Of a stretch of DNA of 64,000 nt, positions 34,301 through 47,330 are shown one piece after another. The DNA is from Laetmonice hystrix. Lineage: Eukaryota. The notes beneath the pieces were generated by a model. The model did no database searches and was not told where the DNA came from. It saw only the letters and a list, made by a program, of their open reading frames with translations. Location: assembly GCA_965235115.1 (NCBI GenBank), contig OZ249446.1, forward strand, positions 17,236,001 through 17,300,000, read 5' to 3'. The position numbers and the translations under genes were made by a program. The number at the start of each line of letters is the position of its first letter. The first letter of the stretch is position 1.

Positions 34301-35882
34301 GTACAGCAGACAAATAATTAGGGGTCTCAGCAAATCGTACACCGCATTTTAATTAGCACGTCAGTCAGCTCGCAGGGACAATGTCATCCACTTCTATACT
34401 TGGTCCCTGTTATGCACAAAGAGGCTTGGGACTCATCATGGCAATTTTAAATTAGCGTACCGCGTATGAAGATAGCACATCTTGTAGAAATCAAGATAAA
34501 AAAAACCTTATGTCCTAACAGGGGACCAGCAAAGCGGAAACACCTCTGATCGGAGCCTGCATGACGTTTCGTAGTTTTATTGTACACATGGAAACGCTCC
34601 CATAGGAAATAGGCATAAACCATCGAATCGGAAACCGATAACGGAAACGGACCCATAGAAACCCGGCTTAAAGCACTTATATTAGTTATAATAGTAACTA
34701 CCATGCATTCACGTGCGTCAAAGAGACAGGTCCTTGTCCAGCACTTGTCTTGCGCCACCAATGAGAACCTTACTCAGTTACTGCCCATGAAAATCTCTTA
34801 CTCTCCTCTGATTTCAATAAGTTCCTGATAAACAGGCTATTCTTGACAGATTTACCGCGCGTTGAACCCAATTGTTTTCACAGTGAGGTTACAAAAACAT
34901 GTAACGTTGTTTGGTGGACATAATCTCCCTTCACGTCGTTATGTATAACATTGACAATGACGAATGATACCAACCATACCATACCATACGTGAATGATAC
35001 CAACTATCTCATACCAGATGTTGGAAGGAGAGGGTGTAGAAACCACATTTTACACTCAAATATTTCAACCGTAGCCCAAGAGGATGGAATGAAGAGGTTA
35101 TAGACCACATCGCTTCAAGTCTTATATAATTTCTTTAAACCAGTTTGTGTTAGTTTCAAACTATTTAAGTATTATTGACTGAGTTATTGTTGATTCTATA
35201 ACAAAGCCTCTTCCTAAGTTCAGAGTATTTATTACACAATATGACTTGGATATAAAGTTAATAGTACATGTATCGAGAATTTCTAACTAAGGCATTGATG
35301 TGTTGCAACACTTTGGGACCTGATTGAAATTCCCTTTGAATTCGTTAATTCCTGAAACTGATGTGGCGACAGTGAAACATATATTACGTTTCCTGTGAGA
35401 AAAGAGGATCTTGCATTTCTATCTCCATGCCTCAATGAAACCTTGAAATTATCCATGCACGATTAGTAGACATCTTTACTTGCCCACAAAACAGATATCC
35501 TTTCTGTCACTAGTGTCAGATAGTGTGTAAGGCACGTGATGACTGACTGAGGCATTACACATGAATCATGTTATATTCGACAAGTGGACCATAATAAAGT
35601 AGGAATTGCAATCAGTATTACTCATTTTCCCCCCGATTCCTTCCCCCTACCCACATCCTTATGAATAATGTAATGTGAGCAGTATGGTTATAATTGACAT
35701 TAGTAACACAGCAATTGCTTTGAATCCCTTTCTTCAGTTTCAGGACTGTTTGACCATGATAATAAACCCTTAACCCACCCTTTCTGTGACCCTCCAATGA
35801 CGTCATCAATGGATTTAGTTATCCGCTGACCACAAATCTTGCAGTATTCTGAGACTGTTCCACTAGTTCCAGACAGGTACGT

Positions 35883-38823
35883 TCAGTTTCGCAGTTTCGC
35901 AGACAGTAGTCCAATCGCAGCAGCACCGACAACAGTCCCAAGCCAAATCTTCCAACTGCTACTGCGGACATCTTCAGTGTGTCTGAAGAATTCCAGAAAA
36001 TCATCCTGGAACAAAAAAGGAAAATTTCATATTATGATTACTTACTAACCAATAAATGGCACAAGATTTACCACTTTACAATTATTATTATTTTTTTACT
36101 AACAGCCGTCTGATCCCTCATTGGCCATGAATTGAATTTTTTAGTAGACAGACACTTAAAATTATTTTTTCAATTTTTACTAAACATTCATTACACTTAT
36201 ATTCGAAGACCATACTTATATACCAGTCAAAGTCAATTAGTAACAATTTCGACTGTCACGGGGGCATAGACTACAGTTAGCCATTAAGTGTAAAGTCCTA
36301 GAACCTGTGAAGATAATTTGCCTCGGTCAAATGTTGTTTTTTTCGTAACTTCACCTTTAACAAGCAAAGTATTAGACTATTACATAAATTTGAAAGTGTT
36401 CTCTTCGTCTCTGTTTAAAAATATAATACATGTACATGTAGTTGTTTTTAATAGTAAAAGTACAACCCTGACATGACAACATGATCTTGTATTCAGACCC
36501 AAGCGCCACATGTAAGGAACCCCTTGCTATCCGCCTTAATGGTCATGCATAGTGACTACCGGCGGTTTGTTACACAGCTGGGTCACTAAGTACTGTTGTT
36601 TGCTGTAGCCAGGATCACAGACAGCTACCAGTGGGGCAAACCACAGGAAATGTTTGCTTAACCTAATTCTCCAATTGTACAAAATCTGACAGTTCAGTGA
36701 CTATATTAAAGCAATATATTTCCTCACTTGTCCCCTCATCTGCCATTAATGCTGAATTAGAGGACTTATATAATACGCATTCCTGAATGATTCTATCACA
36801 GGGATGTTGACACAGCTAAGATGGAGCTTGAGTAGGCGTTACAGAAATAAACTGGTCTTGGCATAGGTTATAATACGGACCTTCCTGTTAAAATGAACTA
36901 TCTTATACACTGCCCAGGATATGAAAGTCTGACACAAAATGTCTACTGCTGTGTGAGACTGTGACCAATATTCTCATTCTATGTCACATCATTAACAAAT
37001 TTCAAACTGATGTATGACAAATGTCTTTAGTTTTTCCCCCCCAGGCTCAGTCCAATGTTTTGTTTAATGTGATCCAAGATGCCAACAGTTGTACTCATTC
37101 TTGCCATGATTCTTGCAAAGCTCTGTTCTAATAATAACATCTCACATCTGTCATTGAGGAGTCACATGAAGATCACAGTATAGGTTCGTGAAATTTGCAG
37201 TTTAAAAACACTTTTCCAAACTCTCGCCATGCCTCGTTGACCACAATTCCCAACCACATCTTCCAAGTTTCATCATGTCCCCAGCATTCCACAAAATTAT
37301 CCTAGAAAATAAAAAGAAAAAAAAAACTTGAAAAAGAAGGCAAATATAGGCGTAGGAATGCACATTCCACATTCCGGCTGCACCCAATTTTTTTTACCCT
37401 AGGAGGAGGTGATGATGACACCTGCATCTGGACACTAGGACAGCTACTTTTTACACTATGGCCAGGCTGGCCTGGCGCAGCATCTAACCGACCTGTTTCA
37501 GGATGTTACCACCAATCGAGAACCCTACTACAAAACCATTATAATATTATGAGATTTTATTATTCATAATATTATGAGATTTTATTATTCATAATTTTAA
37601 GTAAATCCTTTATCTGTCAAGAACTAGTTGTCATCTCAGGTGTCAGGACCCGTTTCACTAAGCTGGCGACATCATAAATGTCGTCTGGTGCGGCCAACGT
37701 TAAAGCAGTGGAGGACGTCGCCAGAACGGGTACCGTAACATTTTACCTTATATGGGCCGGCCATGTCGCCGGCTTAGTGAAACGGGGCCCAAGTATCCAC
37801 CATACTTACCCAGCCACCTTCACTCTCGATCCATTCTTTCAGCTCCTCTTCGATGTAGCTACCAAGGAAATCAGCAATATCCTTGGTCAATCCTTTCATT
37901 CCCTTCTTGGCGCTACCCTTTGCAAGCGACGCACAGAAAGCATACACTGCAACAACTCGCCCCCAGTTTGGTGGTGGATGAGCCTTCAAAACCTCATCCA
38001 AAATGTTTCGTAGCGTCATGAAGCCATTTATCTCCTCAACTTTAATGAAATTCAAACAACTCTCAAAAAATTCCATGTGGTTCTTAGTCACTTCTGTGAC
38101 CTTCAAGCGCATTGTTGCTTCATATTGTGAGCTGGGGGCAGGAGCATTTTCTTCACCCAAAGCAATATAGTTTACAATATCATGGGCAAGGGATCTGGCA
38201 ATAAATCCGCTGTTTTTATCAACCGATGTCTGTGGCACATTAGATGCTCTTGCACTATCGATATCGTCAATATTTCGGAACTGTTCAACCATTCGGACAA
38301 CATCACGTTCACTGAGCCCTGCTTTTTCCATCGCTTTTTGCAGGTGTTGAAATCGTCCCTCATCTTTGTCAACGACGACATTGGGTCCCGCCTTGTTCTG
38401 ATCTTCTTTCACTTTCTTCAGCTCGCCTTCATAATCCTTCAATACTTTGTGTTGCAGCCACAGTTGGTTTTGGAGAACTTCAAGTTTGGTCGAGTAATCC
38501 AGCTCGTCGTAGCCTTGAGGTTCCTCACTACTCTGGACATCAGGAACAGACTCAGGGTCAGTCTCACGGATTCGCTTTTCTAACCAATCGTAGTCCTCCA
38601 ACAGCGCCTTGCAAAACGACTCAAACGACTGTTTTTTCACCAATATTTTCATTAGTTTTCGCATGGCCTCTTGTTTCGTCAAGTGGATCAGAGTGACACT
38701 GTCCATTTCGTCATCAGTCACCATACCATCCTCGTACAGTTGGTCGATCACACACTTCACGTTCACAATCTGTATAATCTCTTTGCAGTTGCCCCGCAGC
38801 TTTTTTTTGGCTACCTCATCCAT
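35883..38823 (-). CDS. CARD + coiled-coil + Bcl-2-family fusion protein, membrane-anchored isoform (378 aa)
   Basis: Exon 38823-37810 (338 codons) encodes an Apaf-1-like CARD (MDEVAKKKL...VIDQLYEDGMVTDDE...LMKILVKKQSFESFCKALLEDYDWL), a coiled coil, BH4-like SLAHDIVNY, BH1 NWGRVVAVYAF and BH2 WIESEGGW. It ends at the family-typical phase-0 intron (TGG|GTAAGT). Last exon 36005-35883 encodes DDFLEFFRHTEDVRSSSWKIWLGTVVGAAAIGLLSAKLRN*, which completes BH2 and adds a tail anchor. A likely 5'UTR intron is at 38919-38837. Confidence 0.92.
37173..37301 (-). CDS. Paralogous alternative terminal exon of the CARD-Bcl-2 gene, without a hydrophobic anchor
   Basis: Polypyrimidine acceptor ending TTCTAG, phase 0, encoding DNFVECWGHDETWKMWLGIVVNEAWREFGKVFLNCKFHEPIL*. 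It shares D.F.E...H and WK.WLG.VV with the distal exon. ATTAAA lies about 100 nt downstream. Usage is unproven. Confidence 0.6.
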   Translation of the reverse strand, partial: DNFVECWGHDETWKMWLGIVVNEAWREFGKVFLNCKFHEPIL

Positions 38824-38947
38824 TTTCTTCAAAGGACTGCACACTTTATATTTAACTAAAGTGTAAACTATCGTCGATTTGTGCTGTGTAATGCTGTGGC
38901 ATTTGATTTCCGTGCTCACCTCCGTCCAACATTATCTTTCAGAATAC

Positions 38948-39070
38948 CACTTCCGTTTTGGCAGTCACCCTCGCTGGTCCCCTGTCCTAACAGACGCTCC
39001 GCGCGCCCTCTTGCGTCAATGATAACAAGTACTTAGGTATACTCACCAGGTGGCGCTTACGGAAATCCCA
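38948..39070 (-). promoter_or_regulatory. Motif cluster at the 5' end of the CARD-Bcl-2 gene (ETS, C/EBP-ATF, CTCF-like, kappaB-like)
   Basis: CACTTCCGTT at 38948-38957, TTGCGTCAAT at 39011-39020, TCACCAGGTGGCGCT at 39043-39057, and GGAAATCCC at 39061-39069. These are motif matches only. Confidence 0.4.
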
Positions 39071-39082
39071 GGGAGAATTTAA

Positions 39083-39899
39083 AGGGGCATATTAGGCCTA
39101 TGAGGAAACGTGAAAAATCGGTATTTCAAAGATCTTTTGCTGTTTTCATAAAGAGATCCTTCATTAATATTGCTTGGTAAACAAAGACAGACTTATCAGT
39201 TTAATTTTGTGTGAGAAATCGAAGTTTATAAAGCTCCCTTGCCCGCTTTTCTGCCGATTTCGTAAAATATTTTTTTGGGTGGCATTCTGATGGTGGACGA
39301 ACGAGTGCAACTGCTGAATTGTTTACAAATAAGCGAAGCACGTGACTAAGCACATGCAGAAAGTGCACACGCAGGATGTCACACAGTAGGCCTATGCAAT
39401 TACACGGGTTGATGGGAGGTTGTCTAGGGCCTATAGCATATTATGGCAGGAGATGTGCTATCGGGAGAAATCTATAGATAGGCCTATCAGGGTGGTGAAC
39501 TGACACCCCCGCAGTCGGCACTGTGAGCGCGCGTAGCGCACGAAGCCCTCGCAACCGGAGGGGGCCGGTGGGGGGGGGGGGGGCTGATCTGGCAAGATTT
39601 TGGGCCGCAACGCCTTCCTCTCTGAGGCATGATTTCTTCCCGTTCTGCAGTTGTCAAAGCTCGTCGGCCCTATAGCCACTTTTGGCATGGTAAAGCGAAC
39701 GTTCTTCTGAGGATTTCCATACTTTTATACAACAAAACTCGACATTTGATATGTAATGCAAAATTGCAGGACACGGTTGAATGTGCGACTTTATAGTAGG
39801 CCTACTCTATTGTTGCAATATTTTTGTCCCTGGAGTTAATGTTTGTAGGCCTATATGTAGGATCCGTTCGCTTTGGAATCTAGGCCTAGCCTATGTCCT
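39083..39899. mobile_element. Kolobok-like non-autonomous element with TTAA TSD
   Basis: TTAA|AGGGGCATA ... TATGTCCT|TTAA, with short imperfect TIRs and purine-purine termini. Confidence 0.55.
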
Positions 39900-41029
39900 T
39901 TAAATATTTTACGTAGAGAAAGTCTACACCTTTAATATCTAGGGTCGGAACAAACGGAAGAATGTCTGCATGATATCGTCGCCAAAGAGCATTTAATTCA
40001 TTATACTGGTCACATAGGCCTAGATAGGCTACACAATAGGCTATAGATCTAGCCTATAGAGAGGTCTAAGCCTAGATACAAAGAACCGTTCACTTATTTC
40101 TTAATCTTTAGGCTATATCATGCCATCACATTAAGAATCATTCCTCATTTTGTCCCCAAGTTTGAATACCACCGGTAAACCAATAATTGCTATAATAACA
40201 TTACCGTTTTATAGTAGGCCTAATAGGCCCAGGCCTAGACTCTATAGGCACTATTAGGGTCCAACAAACCACATAGCGTAGCCCACCCAAGATATAGCAT
40301 AACCGATCAGACAATCAGGAGATGATTAGCCTATATAGACCACGATATGCAGTGTGTTCTTTATATAGGAATGACAGGCAACCCTTATGCTATCATTAAT
40401 ATTGTTAATAGCCTAGCCTATTTGCCCAACAAGTTTCAAACTCAAGCCTGATGTCTGAATCTCCGTGCACGGTAGACGTACGTCGGACCCGCGGAACAAG
40501 GCAGCCCGTAAAATATCCTCCGAGAAAATGTTGTGGCAGGTCAAACTGAAACATAAAGAAAAACGTTTATTTTTCGTTACTTTTTCCTCCAAGGAGACTG
40601 CATGGGGATACAGCATGCAGATGGCGCCGGGGCGGATCCAGGATTTTCGCTTGGGGGGGGGGGGGGGGGGGGGCTAGTCGGAAGTCGGAAAGGGGTTAGC
40701 CTATATTTGGCAAAGCTATGAAAGTGCACATATATATAGGCCCCTAGGACATGGGTGTTACCCTGAAGCTGAAATCTGTGAAGTAGGGCCTACTAAAATA
40801 AATTGAAAATAATTAAAAGAAAAGAACAAATTAACTGAAATGATTACACGAAATCAATTTTGTCCCAAATTTAGGGGGGGGGCTTGCCCCCTAGATCCGC
40901 CTTTGGATGGAATACATGATGGTTCGTGAAATTATCCATCGACAGTGTACATAGAATGTTAATAGGGCATAATCGAATGGTGAAATACACCAACGATCAG
41001 TTATACATATATAAATAACGTCATAATAA

Positions 41030-44000
41030 TTAAGCTATGCTACGCAGGACATAGAAATCTGGTATCGTGATTGCACTTTCTGAAGGAGAACACCATAGTA
41101 GGTTAAGTATAGGCCTATATAGTTACAGAGAACTTACCAGTACAGCAGACACCAGCATCAACCTGGGTCCTGTTGCAAGTTGTTGGTTCAAACAGACTGC
41201 AAAATATGGCATTATCTACACAAAATCCCAGAGGTGTCGTGTTGGGCGGACAACTCACTGAAAAATAAGGCAACATAATAAAAAATAAAACCTTCTAGAA
41301 AAACATCAATGCGCTTATAATAATTCGCCAAACATCTTGCCTTCTGCCTGTAGAATATGTCGCACTGGCATAATGTTAACCGTCTTACTCTATATAGGCT
41401 ACACACGAGTTTCACACGACCTACGAAGCGTGCACGAATTTTTCGTCGGTCGGGTGAAACTTTCACACGACTGACCGACACAAGTTTCAACCGATTTTCT
41501 GTTTTTCAATATGCAGAGCGGTTTTCACACGACCGATTTTTTTTATTGTGAATTTGTCATGCAGTTAAATCGGTCGTGTGAGCATATAGACTGCATTATA
41601 GGACCGATTTTGCCACACGATTTTTTAAAATATTTTGAATTTGGCGCTAGATGAAGAGATTCACGATAAAGCATCCCTAGCTTCGTATTGTCACATGACA
41701 ACAAAAGAACCGTACCGCATAACTCGGTTTTGCAATGGAAGACGATTTAACGGGCATTTTTTGCGGCCATGGCGGCTAGTGCCGCTGTTGCCATATTGTG
41801 TATACATGTATGCAGTCTCCACCGGTTCCTGGTCTGACCAAAGCCCTCTATATACTGGCTTTGGTCTGCCTCGGCGTAAGAAGAGGCGAGTATGCGCTTT
41901 TGGCTCCGAGATCGGTATACAAACTACATCAGGAACTCATGCACAGTGCAGGGCCGTCGGAACGTATTTGGAAGTGGGGGGGGGGGGGGGGGGCAAGCCT
42001 GGGCAGGGGCGCCGCTGCCTATTTCAAAGTGTGGGGGGGCAATCTGTGTTTGACCTTTTCCCCCGAGATTTATGTACCATAAGAATTGCAAAATAACAGT
42101 GTATTCACACCCCCCCCCCCAAGGGGCGGACCCAGGATTTTCTTTGCGGGGGGGGGGGGGGGGGGGGGGTGTCAGAAGGTATGCCTTTAGTGCTCTTTCC
42201 ATAGCCAGTGGGCAATAATGCGATAGAATCATGTTCATTATACAAGTAGTCCTACCATGTGTCGTTTTGTTGTCGTTCATGGGCGCGGCCATATTGCTTC
42301 TTATAATTTGATAAATTTCCATATCACGCGCCGATTTAGGTAAATTAAGTGATTCATTCTTCTTCTTCTTCAAACGTTCCCCTTCATACCAGAAATTTAT
42401 ATTTGCACATACGATGCCAAGGAGCAGGTTTTAATAATACACTACTTCCTGGCTCGATGGGATATGACGGTTCACTCAGTGCCTCGCTACACAGCTCCAT
42501 TTTGCCGTGTATCTTGTTGCCAACATGGCCACTAACTCACCCGAGGGTATATTCGAATAGCAGGAAGTAACGTCACTTATCACTTCAATTCAGTTTCCTT
42601 AAAGATTTAAATGTATATCTAATTTGAGTTGAAACAGTTCAAACTACTTTGCTGGACTATTTTTTTACTTCTTCACTGCATTTCTATCTCTTGGGTACGG
42701 CCTTTCGCCTGCGTATGCAGTTACGATTGCACCAGTGCATTGTGGGAAGTCGATTTGATTCCCACAGTACCTAACCAGCAGGGTCGTCGTCTCCAGAGTA
42801 GGCCCTACCAGCATGCGCAGTTTGAACTCGGTTGGTGCTGTTGTGATCCGTCTACGATCACCGCGTCGATATTAGCCAATCAGAGAGTAGCAGCGCGACT
42901 CATTAGCAAGTGATCGGCTGCTTGCCGGGGCGAGGTCGCAGCATGCAGCGATTCTCATCGATTGTCATGTGCGATCGCTAGGAACCTGAGTGGGAGCTCA
43001 CGATTTGCAACCGATAGTCTCTGGCGGGCATTACGCACTATAAAGTGCTGAACCCACCAAGGCGATTCCCCTTGCGACGCCCATGCGATTTTGACATTAC
43101 ACTTTTATTTTACTGTAATTTTGAGATTAAAGGATGGAACCCATTTCCTGAAACGGAGAAGGCCAGCCAGGAAAAAATTTAGAGTGAAATTCCACCATTA
43201 AATCAAAAACCGCATGGCCGTCGCAAGGGGAATCGCCTTGGTGGGTTCAGCACCTTATAATACATGTATGTATACTCACCTGGGCAGCAGATGCCCGTAG
43301 AAATCGGGACTGTGTCGCAGCCTGTACCATCAGCACAATCTGTATTGTTGACACACGGTCCCATGGTGGCAGGGGGTAGACCGGTCCTACAGACGATTGG
43401 CGTGGTGGTGGTGGTCGGCGTGGTGGTGGTGGTGGTCGGCGTGGTGGTGGTGGTGGTCGGCGTGGTGGTGGTGGTGGTCGGCGTGGTGGTGGTGGGGGTC
43501 GGCGTGGTGGTGGTGGTGGTCGGCGTGGTGGTGGTGGTGGTCGGCGTGGTGGTGGTGGTGGTCGGCATGGTGGTGGTGGTGGTGTTGGTCGGCGTGGTGG
43601 TGGTGGTGGTCTTTCCTGGAATTTACAAACGGACAGCACTAAGACTATAGATTAGTAAGACTATAAAAGTAGTCTTAAAGCAGTCTTGAGTCGCAAGTCG
43701 AAGTCGCGAGAAAATGAACGGACGGCAAACATGCAGCAACACATGACACACACAAGCGGCGAAACCAAAACGTCCATTCGTCGCAATAAATTTTCTTCGC
43801 CAAACCCCCGAAATAATTTGTTTGCTGGACTCTGAATTCGTTTTGCAGCCCTGTTAAATGATTTGCAGTGGTTCTAGAGCGGCTGGGTGTAATGTCTGCA
43901 AAAAAATCAGGTCTGTGGCTATTGGGAGAGCAGTGCAAGGGACACCCTGTCGTGACCCCCTGAAATACCGCATTTACGCCTTTTTAGGATATATGTCGAT

Positions 44001-45311
44001 GATGACATGATAAAAAAGTAAATGTGCCTGGTACATGGGTTAACCGGGTTCCTACTGCATATTGCACTCAAAAACGAATTCATAGTCCAGCAAACAAATT
44101 ATTTCGGGGGTTTGGTGGAGAAAATTTATTGCGACGAATGGACGTTTTGGTTTCGCCGCTTGTGTGTGTCATGTGTTGGCGCATGTTTTCCGTCCGTTCA
44201 TCGAATCAGGTAACCGGGTGCGTCAAACGCACTCCGATTACCGCACTGTGTCACCGGCTATACACTCCTTCTCAGACCAAATTCAATTGTGTCTACAAGT
44301 CGCACGCTTGAAAGGTACAATTCACTCTGGTAAAGCGGATTTCTTCTGAGGCAAAATCTAGTTTTGTGCATGAAATATGTAGGCCTACACCCTCCCCCGT
44401 TTAAAGTTATGTTATGTTTTAATGGTGTAACTTTTCTAATGGCCTATTTTTGTCCTCGTTATTCTCAGCAGGGTAGATGTATAGATATTCCATTCGCCAG
44501 TACCCGCTCTCGTGCTACATGCCTCATCTTTGCCTCTAGCGTCTAAGGGCATGCAGCCCTCGGGCAATCCCTCCGGCATGAAACATCCTCTAATTAGTGC
44601 ACTTTTGCAATTGATATTGCAGTCCGCTTCGCGTCAGAATTTTGATAATGTGGCTATTAAGAAAGCATTTTGCAGGGTGTAATATCTACCAAACTTACAA
44701 CTGCAACAGACTTAATTGTAAATTTTACATTTGGACGGTTGACATACCTCCGATGGGCAAACCTTCTTTTAAACGTGATTATATGAAGCAACATAGAAAG
44801 TAAAATGAATAAAACCATTACCTTTTTTACATACATGTTCACATAGTTTCTTGTGGGTGAATTTGTTGTAATTTCCACCGCAGCCACTGTACCAGAATGG
44901 CTCACAACTTCCCAATTGGACGTCATAGTAATATCTGACTTGATATTCGTAACTGTGCCCGTAACATCGTCCTCGTTTAGGGATGAGAAAACATGTGTGT
45001 TCAAGATCTGGAATAATATCACGACGTAATCTAACTTGTGTGTTCAGCTTTGATGTTCAGCTTAAAATTAAAACGTTATAGAAAAATACAGTGCCCAAAA
45101 TTAGTAAGTCTCGATAGAGATACGACACTGAGTGACTGTTGTAGTGTTAGTACTTACCGCTGTGATGCCCGTACTCTGACTGCTGATGATGACTGACGTA
45201 CCGGTCCCCGTACCTGCCGCCACCATACCTTCCCGAAACTAGAGTCCCCTGTTGTAGTAGTAGTACAGCTACCAGGATGCCACTTAGGCATATTGTCGAT
45301 ACGAGTGTCAT
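41030..45311 (-). CDS. Secreted multidomain protein: signal peptide, Gly/Tyr/His peptide, Kunitz domain, Thr-rich mucin linker, two lustrin-type Cys-rich domains (about 281 aa)
   Basis: Phase-1 modular exons: 45311-45158 (MTLVSTICLSGILVAVLLLQQGTLVSG|RYGGGRYGDRYVSHHQQSEYGHHS); 45007-44822 (Kunitz CFLIPKRGRCYG...CEPFWYSGCGGNYNKF...CEHVC); 43615-43280 (T6P-type repeats plus VCRTGLPPATMGPCVNNTDCADGTGCDTVPISTGICCP); 41257-41138 (CPPNTTPLGFCVDNAIFCSLFEPTTCNRTQVDAGVCC). A tentative last exon, 41079-41030, follows a 58-nt intron and is low confidence. An upstream acceptor at 45357 implies a non-coding first exon. Confidence 0.85.
43041..43257. mobile_element. MITE with about 55-bp TIRs and TA (or TATA) TSD; related ends at about 61366-61450 and 63290-63330
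   Basis: TAAAGTGCTGAACCCACCAAGGCGATTCCCCTTGCGACG...CATGCGATTTT is mirrored at 43200-43257. It lies about 20 nt from a splice donor. Confidence 0.85.
43714..44201. repeat. Long inverted repeat (about 130-bp arms, about 225-bp spacer) in an intron of the Kunitz gene
   Basis: Arm 43714-43844 is the near-perfect reverse complement of 44071-44201. Confidence 0.9.
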
Positions 45312-46527: not shown

Positions 46528-47330
46528 TTAAGCTTTTAACAAAGCATCTGCATTACAATGGGTCTTACCCGATTTATGACGAATGGTCGTCATGTACTGT
46601 TGAAGGATAAGACTCCATCTCAACATTTTTTGATTGGACTCCTTCACTCGATGTAGCCAAACCAAGGAATTGTGGTCGGTTTCCACAACAAATTCCCTGC
46701 CATAGAGATATAGTCTTAGCAATTCTACTGCCCAAACTAAAGCAAGACACTCTTTCTCTAAAGTTGCTAATGACTGCTCATGGGTAAGCAACTTCTGACC
46801 GCAACGACTGGATGCTCCAAGGTATCCACTCCAGTCTGCGACAGAACAGCACCCAATCCACGTTCCGAAGCGTCTAAATGCACTGCAAATGGCCGATCAA
46901 AGTCAGGCAAATTCAGAATTGGCTCATTTGTCAAAGCTTTTCGAAGTGCCTGGAAGGCATCTTCACAAGCCTTGGTCCACTTGACCTTGCTTGGTTGTCT
47001 TTTCTTTGTTAAGTCACTCAGCGCTGCTGCTTTTTCCGAAAAGTTTGGAATGAACCGCCTGTAGTACCCTACCAGGCCCAACAACGACTTTACCTGTTTC
47101 TTAGTGTTTGGCCTAGGAAACAATCTAATTGCCTCGCCTTTAGCCTGCAATGGCCTTTCCAATAACACACTTACCCGCTCTGGCCACCAAATCTGCTGTT
47201 TTTAAGTCTCTCCGTGCAGAAACTGGCCTTACAAGCTTGAGGTATTCGATATCCTCTCTGCCTAATTGCCTGATTCTCGTGAGTCTTGATGGAATGAACT
47301 GCTGCAAAACTTTACACCTCACCTCCAGTC
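46528..47330 (-). mobile_element. Ty3/Gypsy pol remnant (RT thumb/linker plus RNase H), frameshifted, with the RT core and integrase deleted
   Basis: VKSLLGLVGYYRRFIPNFS, WT..CEDAFQALR..LT..PIL..PDFDRPF..HLDAS..GLGAVLSQ, EKECLA.VWAV....YLYGREF..ETDH..L.WL, RW.L.LQQY and NADAL. Frameshift near 46790. Confidence 0.95.

Follow-up and report, generated by a model that had tools for sequence, protein, structure and literature searches.

A CARD-Bcl-2 gene of Laetmonice hystrix with an apparently duplicated terminal exon

Here we describe a gene of Laetmonice hystrix that encodes a Bcl-2 protein with an N-terminal CARD, and that presents two candidate terminal exons, similar to each other, downstream of its main coding exon. 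The gene lies on the minus strand of a stretch of 64,000 nucleotides (nt) of contig OZ249446.1 (assembly GCA_965235115.1, positions 17,236,001 to 17,300,000). This whole stretch is called the window in what follows; all coordinates refer to it, and its sequence contains no N. A previous interpretation, made from the letters alone and referred to here as the sequence-only reading, had proposed that the two terminal exons, proximal and distal with respect to the splice donor, switch the protein between a membrane-anchored and an anchor-less form, and had offered as a fallback that the proximal exon is a decaying duplicate. The gene structure, the assembled contigs that cover it and the tails of related proteins were analyzed with regard to both possibilities.

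The gene and its two terminal exons

The first exon seen in RNA (37810 to 38927, minus strand) is delimited by its open reading frame, its ATG, its Pfam matches and a spliced contig described below. It comprises a 5′ leader of about 104 nt and a single long coding exon, which runs from the ATG at 38823 to 37810 (338 codons) and ends in ..ESEGGW. The encoded order is a CARD, a coiled linker and the BH1-BH2 region of a Bcl-2 domain up to GGW. Both assignments lie well above the respective Pfam cut-offs: the CARD (PF00619, residues 8-86) has an E value of 5e-7 and 30.0 bits against a cut-off of 23.9, and the Bcl-2 domain (PF00452, residues 243-339) an E value of 5e-21 and 75.7 bits against a cut-off of 31.4. 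The latter match spans profile positions 5-100 of 100 and stops exactly at GGW. Immediately 3′ of these codons lies a phase-0 splice donor, GTAAGT (37804 to 37809, minus strand), used in the same spliced contig. The gene thus has the phase-0 intron right after the BH2 tryptophan (GGW/GTAAGT, 37810/37809) that is characteristic of the Bcl-2 family, with the rest of BH2 and the tail left to the next exon.

The coding capacity of this main exon is clearly maintained. All eight single-nucleotide polymorphisms (SNPs) found among three DNA runs, between window positions 37915 and 38809, are synonymous third-position changes, and the only indel deletes 3 nt at 38224, within the linker (codon 200), so that exactly one codon is removed and the frame is kept. 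Since 8/8 SNPs of the main exon are synonymous, the CARD-Bcl-2 gene as a whole is clearly under purifying selection.

Beyond the donor, two phase-0 acceptors were found, each opening a short terminal frame. The proximal one follows a polypyrimidine tract (37302 to 37340, minus strand, tract and AG acceptor together) and reads ..ttttctag/GAT at 37301. It opens a frame of 42 codons, DNFVECWGHDETWKMWLGIVVNEAWREFGKVFLNCKFHEPIL, closed by a TGA at 37175-37173; the proximal terminal-exon copy therefore occupies 37173 to 37301 on the minus strand, as delimited by translation, paralogy, frame analysis and hydropathy. The distal acceptor, ..gttccag/GAT at 36005, opens a frame of 40 codons, DDFLEFFRHTEDVRSSSWKIWLGTVVGAAAIGLLSAKLRN, whose TGA stop lies at 35885-35883, so that the coding part of the distal terminal exon covers 35883 to 36005 on the same strand. 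The end of BH2 is supplied as DNFVECWG by the proximal exon and as DDFLEFF by the distal one. Of the last 20 nt before each acceptor, 95% are pyrimidines in the proximal copy vs 80% in the distal one.

The similarity between these exons goes beyond what chance would produce, and they are true paralogues. The two peptides share 13 of 29 aligned residues in BLASTP (E 6e-7), and their local score of 62 was not reached by any of 20000 shuffles of the distal peptide (mean 20.4, standard deviation 4.3). At the DNA level, the best non-self match of the distal exon on both strands of the 64 kb is the proximal exon, with a score of 41 against a background maximum of 26. This DNA homology includes about 19 nt of the polypyrimidine tract and extends to AAACTGC(A/G)AA and slightly further, past the stop. 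In this respect the sequence-only reading was accurate: its pair of paralogous exons behind two phase-0 acceptors after GGW/GTAAGT is borne out by sequence, BLASTP and shuffles alike, and its coordinates, peptides and limit of DNA similarity are correct on the minus strand. Two homologous tandem exons with same-phase acceptors, the arrangement expected of alternative last exons, are thus present in the DNA.

It might be argued that the two exons are not duplicates, and that they share just the general BH2 motif or that the proximal piece came from elsewhere, be it a repeat or a different Bcl-2 gene. The D-x-F-x-E portion of the match is indeed a family-wide motif, and genome-wide searches with either tail peptide failed to pick up the other copy, the weak paralogy having been detected by the direct pairwise test. 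Nevertheless, the peptide match continues into W-K-(M/I)-W-L-G-x-V-V, a stretch that does not belong to the motifs of the family, the similarity takes in the polypyrimidine tract and DNA past the stop, and no shuffle attains the observed score. Furthermore, searches of the 627 Mb genome with the two tail peptides and with the DNA of the proximal exon matched the queries themselves and nothing else, so that no alternative donor gene or repeat family can be pointed to; because of this, the proximal copy is neither a repeat nor a piece taken from another Bcl-2 gene. Taken as a whole, an origin other than duplication is very improbable.

The duplication itself is old, because homology between the copies is gone beyond about 160 bp, with nothing significant in the flanks at word size 7, and because the number of synonymous substitutions per synonymous site (dS) is about 0.77 over 24 codons. 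The 1.16 kb that separate the copies (36010-37170) are single copy; transposon insertions are thereby ruled out, at detectable identity, as the origin of this spacer.

Transcripts, reading frames and relatives

Four runs of one study contain the locus. Their kind is unrecorded, and the index lists no public run of this organism as RNA. In three of them (X1 to X3, with contigs amounting to 517-599 Mb) introns are covered just as exons are, and these runs are DNA. The fourth, X4, has 58 Mb of contigs and is transcriptome-like, with introns left uncovered and a joint of the canonical GT..AG type. Contig record 23 of this run, of 2524 nt and a mean word depth of 85.6, covers 38927-37809 and resumes at 36004; the joint (37809/37810 to 36004/36005) skips 1804 nt and is bordered by CT..AC as written on the plus strand, hence by GT..AG when read in the direction of the gene. 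Because this spliced contig joins 37810 to 36005, the splice to the distal exon is real and the anchored messenger and protein are made. Positions 1120-2229 of the contig map to 36004-34901, and about 295 nt continue further, so that the 3′ untranslated region of the anchored messenger (34901 to 35882, minus strand, within the window positions mapped) measures at least 1.27 kb with this extension included.

No depth was seen in the X4 contigs, which come from a single sample, across 36065-37616, an interval that holds the proximal exon and its candidate polyadenylation signal. An index search with 37030-37301 listed only the three DNA-like runs and not X4. Of the two kinds of transcript expected from a pair of alternative last exons, the one with the distal junction was therefore found and the other was not, which amounts to a weak negative, as it is drawn from contigs of one sample.

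As to polyadenylation, the hexamers named by the sequence-only reading exist, ATTAAA at 37068 and AATAAA at 35233. The second had been taken as a candidate signal of the distal exon, and here just its presence holds: the X4 contig reads through it and runs to about 34606, and the next AATAAA stands at 34581. The ATTAAA (37063 to 37068, minus strand), retrieved by pattern scan 105 nt after the proximal stop, is a candidate signal for the proximal exon; two such hexamers occur in the 1.2 kb spacer, and the motif is common here by chance.

The two tails differ in what they would do at a membrane. The best 17-residue window of the distal tail, IWLGTVVGAAAIGLLSA, has a mean Kyte-Doolittle hydropathy of 1.91 and no charged residue, and is followed by KLRN and the stop, whereas the best window of the same length in the proximal tail reaches a mean of 0.68 and contains four charged residues. 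The C-terminal uncharged hydrophobic stretch of about 17-20 residues with a basic flank that marks a tail-anchored Bcl-2 protein is consequently predicted for the distal exon and not for the proximal one. The proximal tail is instead strongly amphipathic, with a hydrophobic moment of up to 1.33 on the Kyte-Doolittle scale.

The sequence-only reading had recognized this asymmetry and had put it down to substitutions in the helix. The asymmetry stands; its cause is another. The distance from GTC to AAACTGC is 35 nt in the proximal copy vs 30 nt in the distal one, a net change of +5 nt, and the shared AAACTGCRAA is consequently read in different frames, as K-L-R/Q in the distal copy and as L-N-C-K in the proximal one. 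The homologue of the distal K-L-R-N-stop is out of frame in the proximal copy, the old stop is gone and a new one closes the frame 8 codons downstream. The charged residues of the proximal helix come from the frameshift and not from substitutions alone, and it is because of this net +5 nt frameshift that the proximal anchor was lost. The 5′ half of the two exons also differs, by an in-frame 15 nt. That a frame of 18 codons stays open after such a frameshift is unsurprising by chance, the probability being estimated at roughly 0.3-0.4.

Over the 24 alignable codons of the pair, the method of Nei and Gojobori gives a dS of 0.77 and 0.33 non-synonymous substitutions per site (dN). The resulting ratio of 0.42 suggests that some constraint may have acted on the proximal copy in its 5′ half, although with 13.5 synonymous sites its interval includes 1, and the data are too few to separate neutral from constrained evolution. 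Polymorphism is uninformative in this regard: no variant was found in either tail exon, and the variant density of the local intron sequence predicts only about 0.5 per 129 nt.

When 1.84 billion representative proteins were scanned in full with HMMER, 381 relatives were returned. About 35-40 of these 381 (representative clusters) align over the whole first exon, from the CARD to GGW. Just two are named CARD-Bcl-2 members, ELT87488.1 from the annelid Capitella teleta (a hypothetical protein) and OAF70731.1 from the orthonectid Intoshia linei. Most homologues are gene predictions whose frame carries on across the intron as GGW/V.., while others continue as D-x-F-L-E; because most of them read through in this manner, the position of the intron is common across the CARD-Bcl-2 family.

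The tails known in three of these proteins (P0003, P0006 and P0029), together with the tail exons located in DNA of three distant relatives (L008, L010 and L013), are all of the anchor type, with Kyte-Doolittle means of 1.78-2.37 and no charged residues. Against these six tails, the distal exon obtains global BLOSUM62 scores of 23-65 and the proximal one scores of -5 to 12.5. In L008, L010 and L013 the GGW donor is followed first by a tail exon of the anchor type, and no second copy of it was found in the available sequence, which extends 2.5 kb, 3.6 kb and 0.5 kb beyond that donor, respectively; the comparison covers these three distant relatives, the closest one (P0001/P0153, ENA ERZ26222911, about 50% identity) standing outside it. 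Because the relatives' tails resemble the distal exon and three relatives show a single tail exon, the proximal copy would be the derived one; the distal exon then appears as the ancestral tail anchor and the duplication as lineage-specific. The tail is nevertheless not invariably an anchor in this family. A distant member from another species, L009:31-1155 (Logan SRR12232907), has a spliced anchor-less transcript that ends in ..ADGW GSFLQFLDKLS-stop and is followed by about 330 nt of 3′ untranslated region, so soluble forms of CARD-Bcl-2 proteins do occur.

Several other elements lie around the gene. Just upstream of the transcript 5′ end, a very high-copy repeat occupies 39000-39560 (summed contig depth of 1e5 to 6e5 in the DNA runs), and at 39054-39587 the DNA-run contigs replace 532 nt with 137 other letters, a structural difference from the assembly. 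Inside the intron, at 37646-37789, there is a 27-nt inverted repeat with arms 93% complementary and 90 nt apart. It has 2-3 times the depth in the DNA runs and a strand-switch joint in X3, and looks like a small element of the miniature inverted-repeat transposable element (MITE) type. The same intron contains a perfect tandem pair of a 25-nt unit (37541-37590). Further upstream, a second X4 contig (744 nt, depth 45.7) matches 39978-40546 on the minus strand, with 175 letters extending to sequence outside the window; it represents another expressed exon, either of a neighbouring gene or a 5′ exon. Also on the minus strand are a long simple repeat without Pfam match (43206-43650), which is Pro/Arg-, His- or Thr-rich in all three frames, and an open frame (44772-45056) in which Pfam recognizes a Kunitz/BPTI domain with an E value of 1.3e-14; this frame probably belongs to a neighbouring gene as one of its exons. 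Finally, two overlapping minus-strand frames at 46531-47201 match reverse-transcriptase RNase H domains (E 1.7e-18 and 2.6e-20) and, with a frameshift between them, constitute a retrotransposon remnant.

Relic or alternative last exon

Altogether, these data lead us to favour, with moderate confidence, the interpretation that the proximal exon is an old duplicate, deprived of its anchor by a frameshift and left out in splicing, and that the distal exon is the constitutive, ancestral tail-anchor exon. According to this scheme, the gene would make a tail-anchored CARD-Bcl-2 protein by splicing the donor after GGW (37810) to the distal acceptor at 36005. The distal exon would supply the end of BH2 and a 17-residue uncharged helix, then K-L-R-N, a combination by which proteins are usually directed, once translated, to insert into the outer membrane of mitochondria or into the endoplasmic reticulum (ER), the probable destinations of this protein. 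An old, lineage-specific duplication of the terminal exon, acceptor included, would have given rise to the proximal copy, whose anchor-coding half would have been destroyed by the net +5 nt change. The exon would then be skipped in the sampled tissue, a likely cause being that the copy has neither a 5′ splice site nor an efficient polyadenylation site and so may not be defined as an exon; it would be functionless. The fallback of the sequence-only reading, a decaying duplicate, thus turns out to be the better one, in view of the missing X4 contig, the single tail in relatives and the frameshift. Of the proposed switch, the anchored half is confirmed by the 37810 to 36005 contig; the switch as such finds no support in the same three observations.

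Several features weigh against this interpretation, and most of them are what would be expected if the proximal exon were instead a regulated alternative last exon, used in some tissue, stage or stress. In that event, splicing from 37810 to 37301 and cleavage after the ATTAAA at 37068 would yield a CARD-Bcl-2 protein without a tail anchor, either soluble or, given its strong amphipathic tail (moment up to 1.33), peripherally bound, whose role beside the anchored form could be that of a decoy in the cytosol or of a relocalised adaptor. The proximal acceptor is undamaged and in phase with the distal one, and with 95% vs 80% pyrimidine its apparent strength is no lower. Its open frame of 42 codons supplies the rest of BH2, including the residues D-x-F-x-E..G typical of the family. 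Conservation is higher in the 5′ half than in the 3′ half, and the pair ratio of 0.42 is lower than expected for one neutral branch. ATTAAA is present 105 nt past the stop, and an anchor-less form is transcribed in the distant relative L009, as it is in vertebrates, where Bcl-2beta is an anchor-less isoform made at the same intron (PMC2691663). Moreover, the RNA evidence comes from a single sample in the form of assembled contigs, which can attest that a transcript is present but not that it is missing, and from which rare variants drop out; the assembler may have trimmed a short branch of low abundance. On the other side, no X4 contig lies on the proximal exon in spite of a gene depth of 85.6, the duplicate was not found in the sequence examined for L008, L010 and L013, the C-terminal half is the product of a frameshift and not conserved sequence, and an ATTAAA is easily encountered by chance, two occurring in the 1.2 kb spacer. 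Regulated use of this exon is therefore a real possibility, though in our view an unlikely one.

Between both extremes, the proximal acceptor could be used at a low level and unproductively, as splicing noise, with no protein function under selection. Such transcripts would end at a weak polyadenylation site, or would run into the distal exon and be degraded. The acceptor is strong and the first to be met in the direction of transcription, so occasional use of it is likely; past the proximal stop, the donor-like GTGAG at 37145 would put a junction downstream of the stop codon; and, as already mentioned, rare variants are dropped from contigs. No read or contig presents such a form, however, and contigs alone cannot tell noise from complete skipping. 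We regard this intermediate alternative as improbable, and retain the skipped, decaying duplicate as the preferred interpretation of the proximal exon.

Known isoforms and the CARD-Bcl-2 family

MAVS and BinCARD are familiar examples of CARD proteins that a C-terminal anchor tethers to the surface of mitochondria or the ER; both have the CARD at the N-terminus, and BinCARD has splice forms with and without the anchor. These proteins lack the Bcl-2 fold, and the likeness would be one of functional analogy only. In vertebrate Bcl-2 genes, an intron splits BH2 after GGW at the same place as in L. hystrix, and their anchor-less forms arise by alternative 3′ processing or by failure to splice, and are not known to come from a duplicated exon. 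As with Bcl-2alpha and Bcl-2beta, and with the C-terminal isoforms of Bcl-x and Bax, the two forms considered here would differ only after the BH2 tryptophan. Unlike the vertebrate case, the anchor-less form is absent from the X4 contigs, and the protein has an N-terminal CARD, which vertebrate Bcl-2 proteins are not known to carry. Vertebrate Bcl-2beta, without the transmembrane domain, is mainly cytosolic (PMC2691663).

From the standpoint of genome structure, tandem exon duplicates are common, many of them are unannotated and only some are expressed, and they are a known source of alternative exons (PMC9013439, PMC9741552). The present pair resembles them in its homologous tandem exons, its same-phase acceptors and its unannotated upstream copy. 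It differs from mutually exclusive exons in that both copies are terminal, with their own stops, so that a choice between them would be one of alternative last exons, and in that one copy is frameshifted. Compared with the annelid CARD-Bcl-2 proteins (Capitella teleta, Intoshia linei and about 35 unnamed clusters), the gene shares the architecture, the intron position and, where it is known, the anchor-type tail; the three relatives with retrievable DNA, on the other hand, have one tail exon in the sequence examined, and identity to these relatives is 28-50%. We found no description in the literature of the CARD-Bcl-2 architecture or of this exon pair. The locus would combine anchor-less Bcl-2 isoforms with tandem exon duplicates, both of which are known, and its novelty is accordingly modest, the combination being seen in DNA only.

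Annelids and molluscs have been reported to lack APAF-1 (PMC10959488, PMC11463336), and it is for this reason that a CARD on a Bcl-2 protein is worth studying. In an animal without APAF-1, a CARD-fused Bcl-2 protein could link the mitochondrial surface directly to CARD caspases, and the duplicated, frameshifted exon might then represent a regulated switch that frees this adaptor, soluble or amphipathic, from its membrane, a lineage-specific tuning of caspase recruitment born of exon duplication; we put this forward as a speculation, and a doubtful one.

Should the proximal exon be used after all, one gene would give rise to an anchored and a free CARD-Bcl-2 protein, and the role of membrane tethering could be put to a direct test in a lineage that reportedly has no APAF-1. 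On present evidence, the locus contains a duplicated terminal exon that has a good acceptor and nevertheless appears to be skipped and decaying, and it cautions against deducing alternative splicing from paired exons in DNA alone. Of greater interest is the CARD-Bcl-2 family itself, which is widespread among the relatives of this gene and whose member in L. hystrix is constrained.

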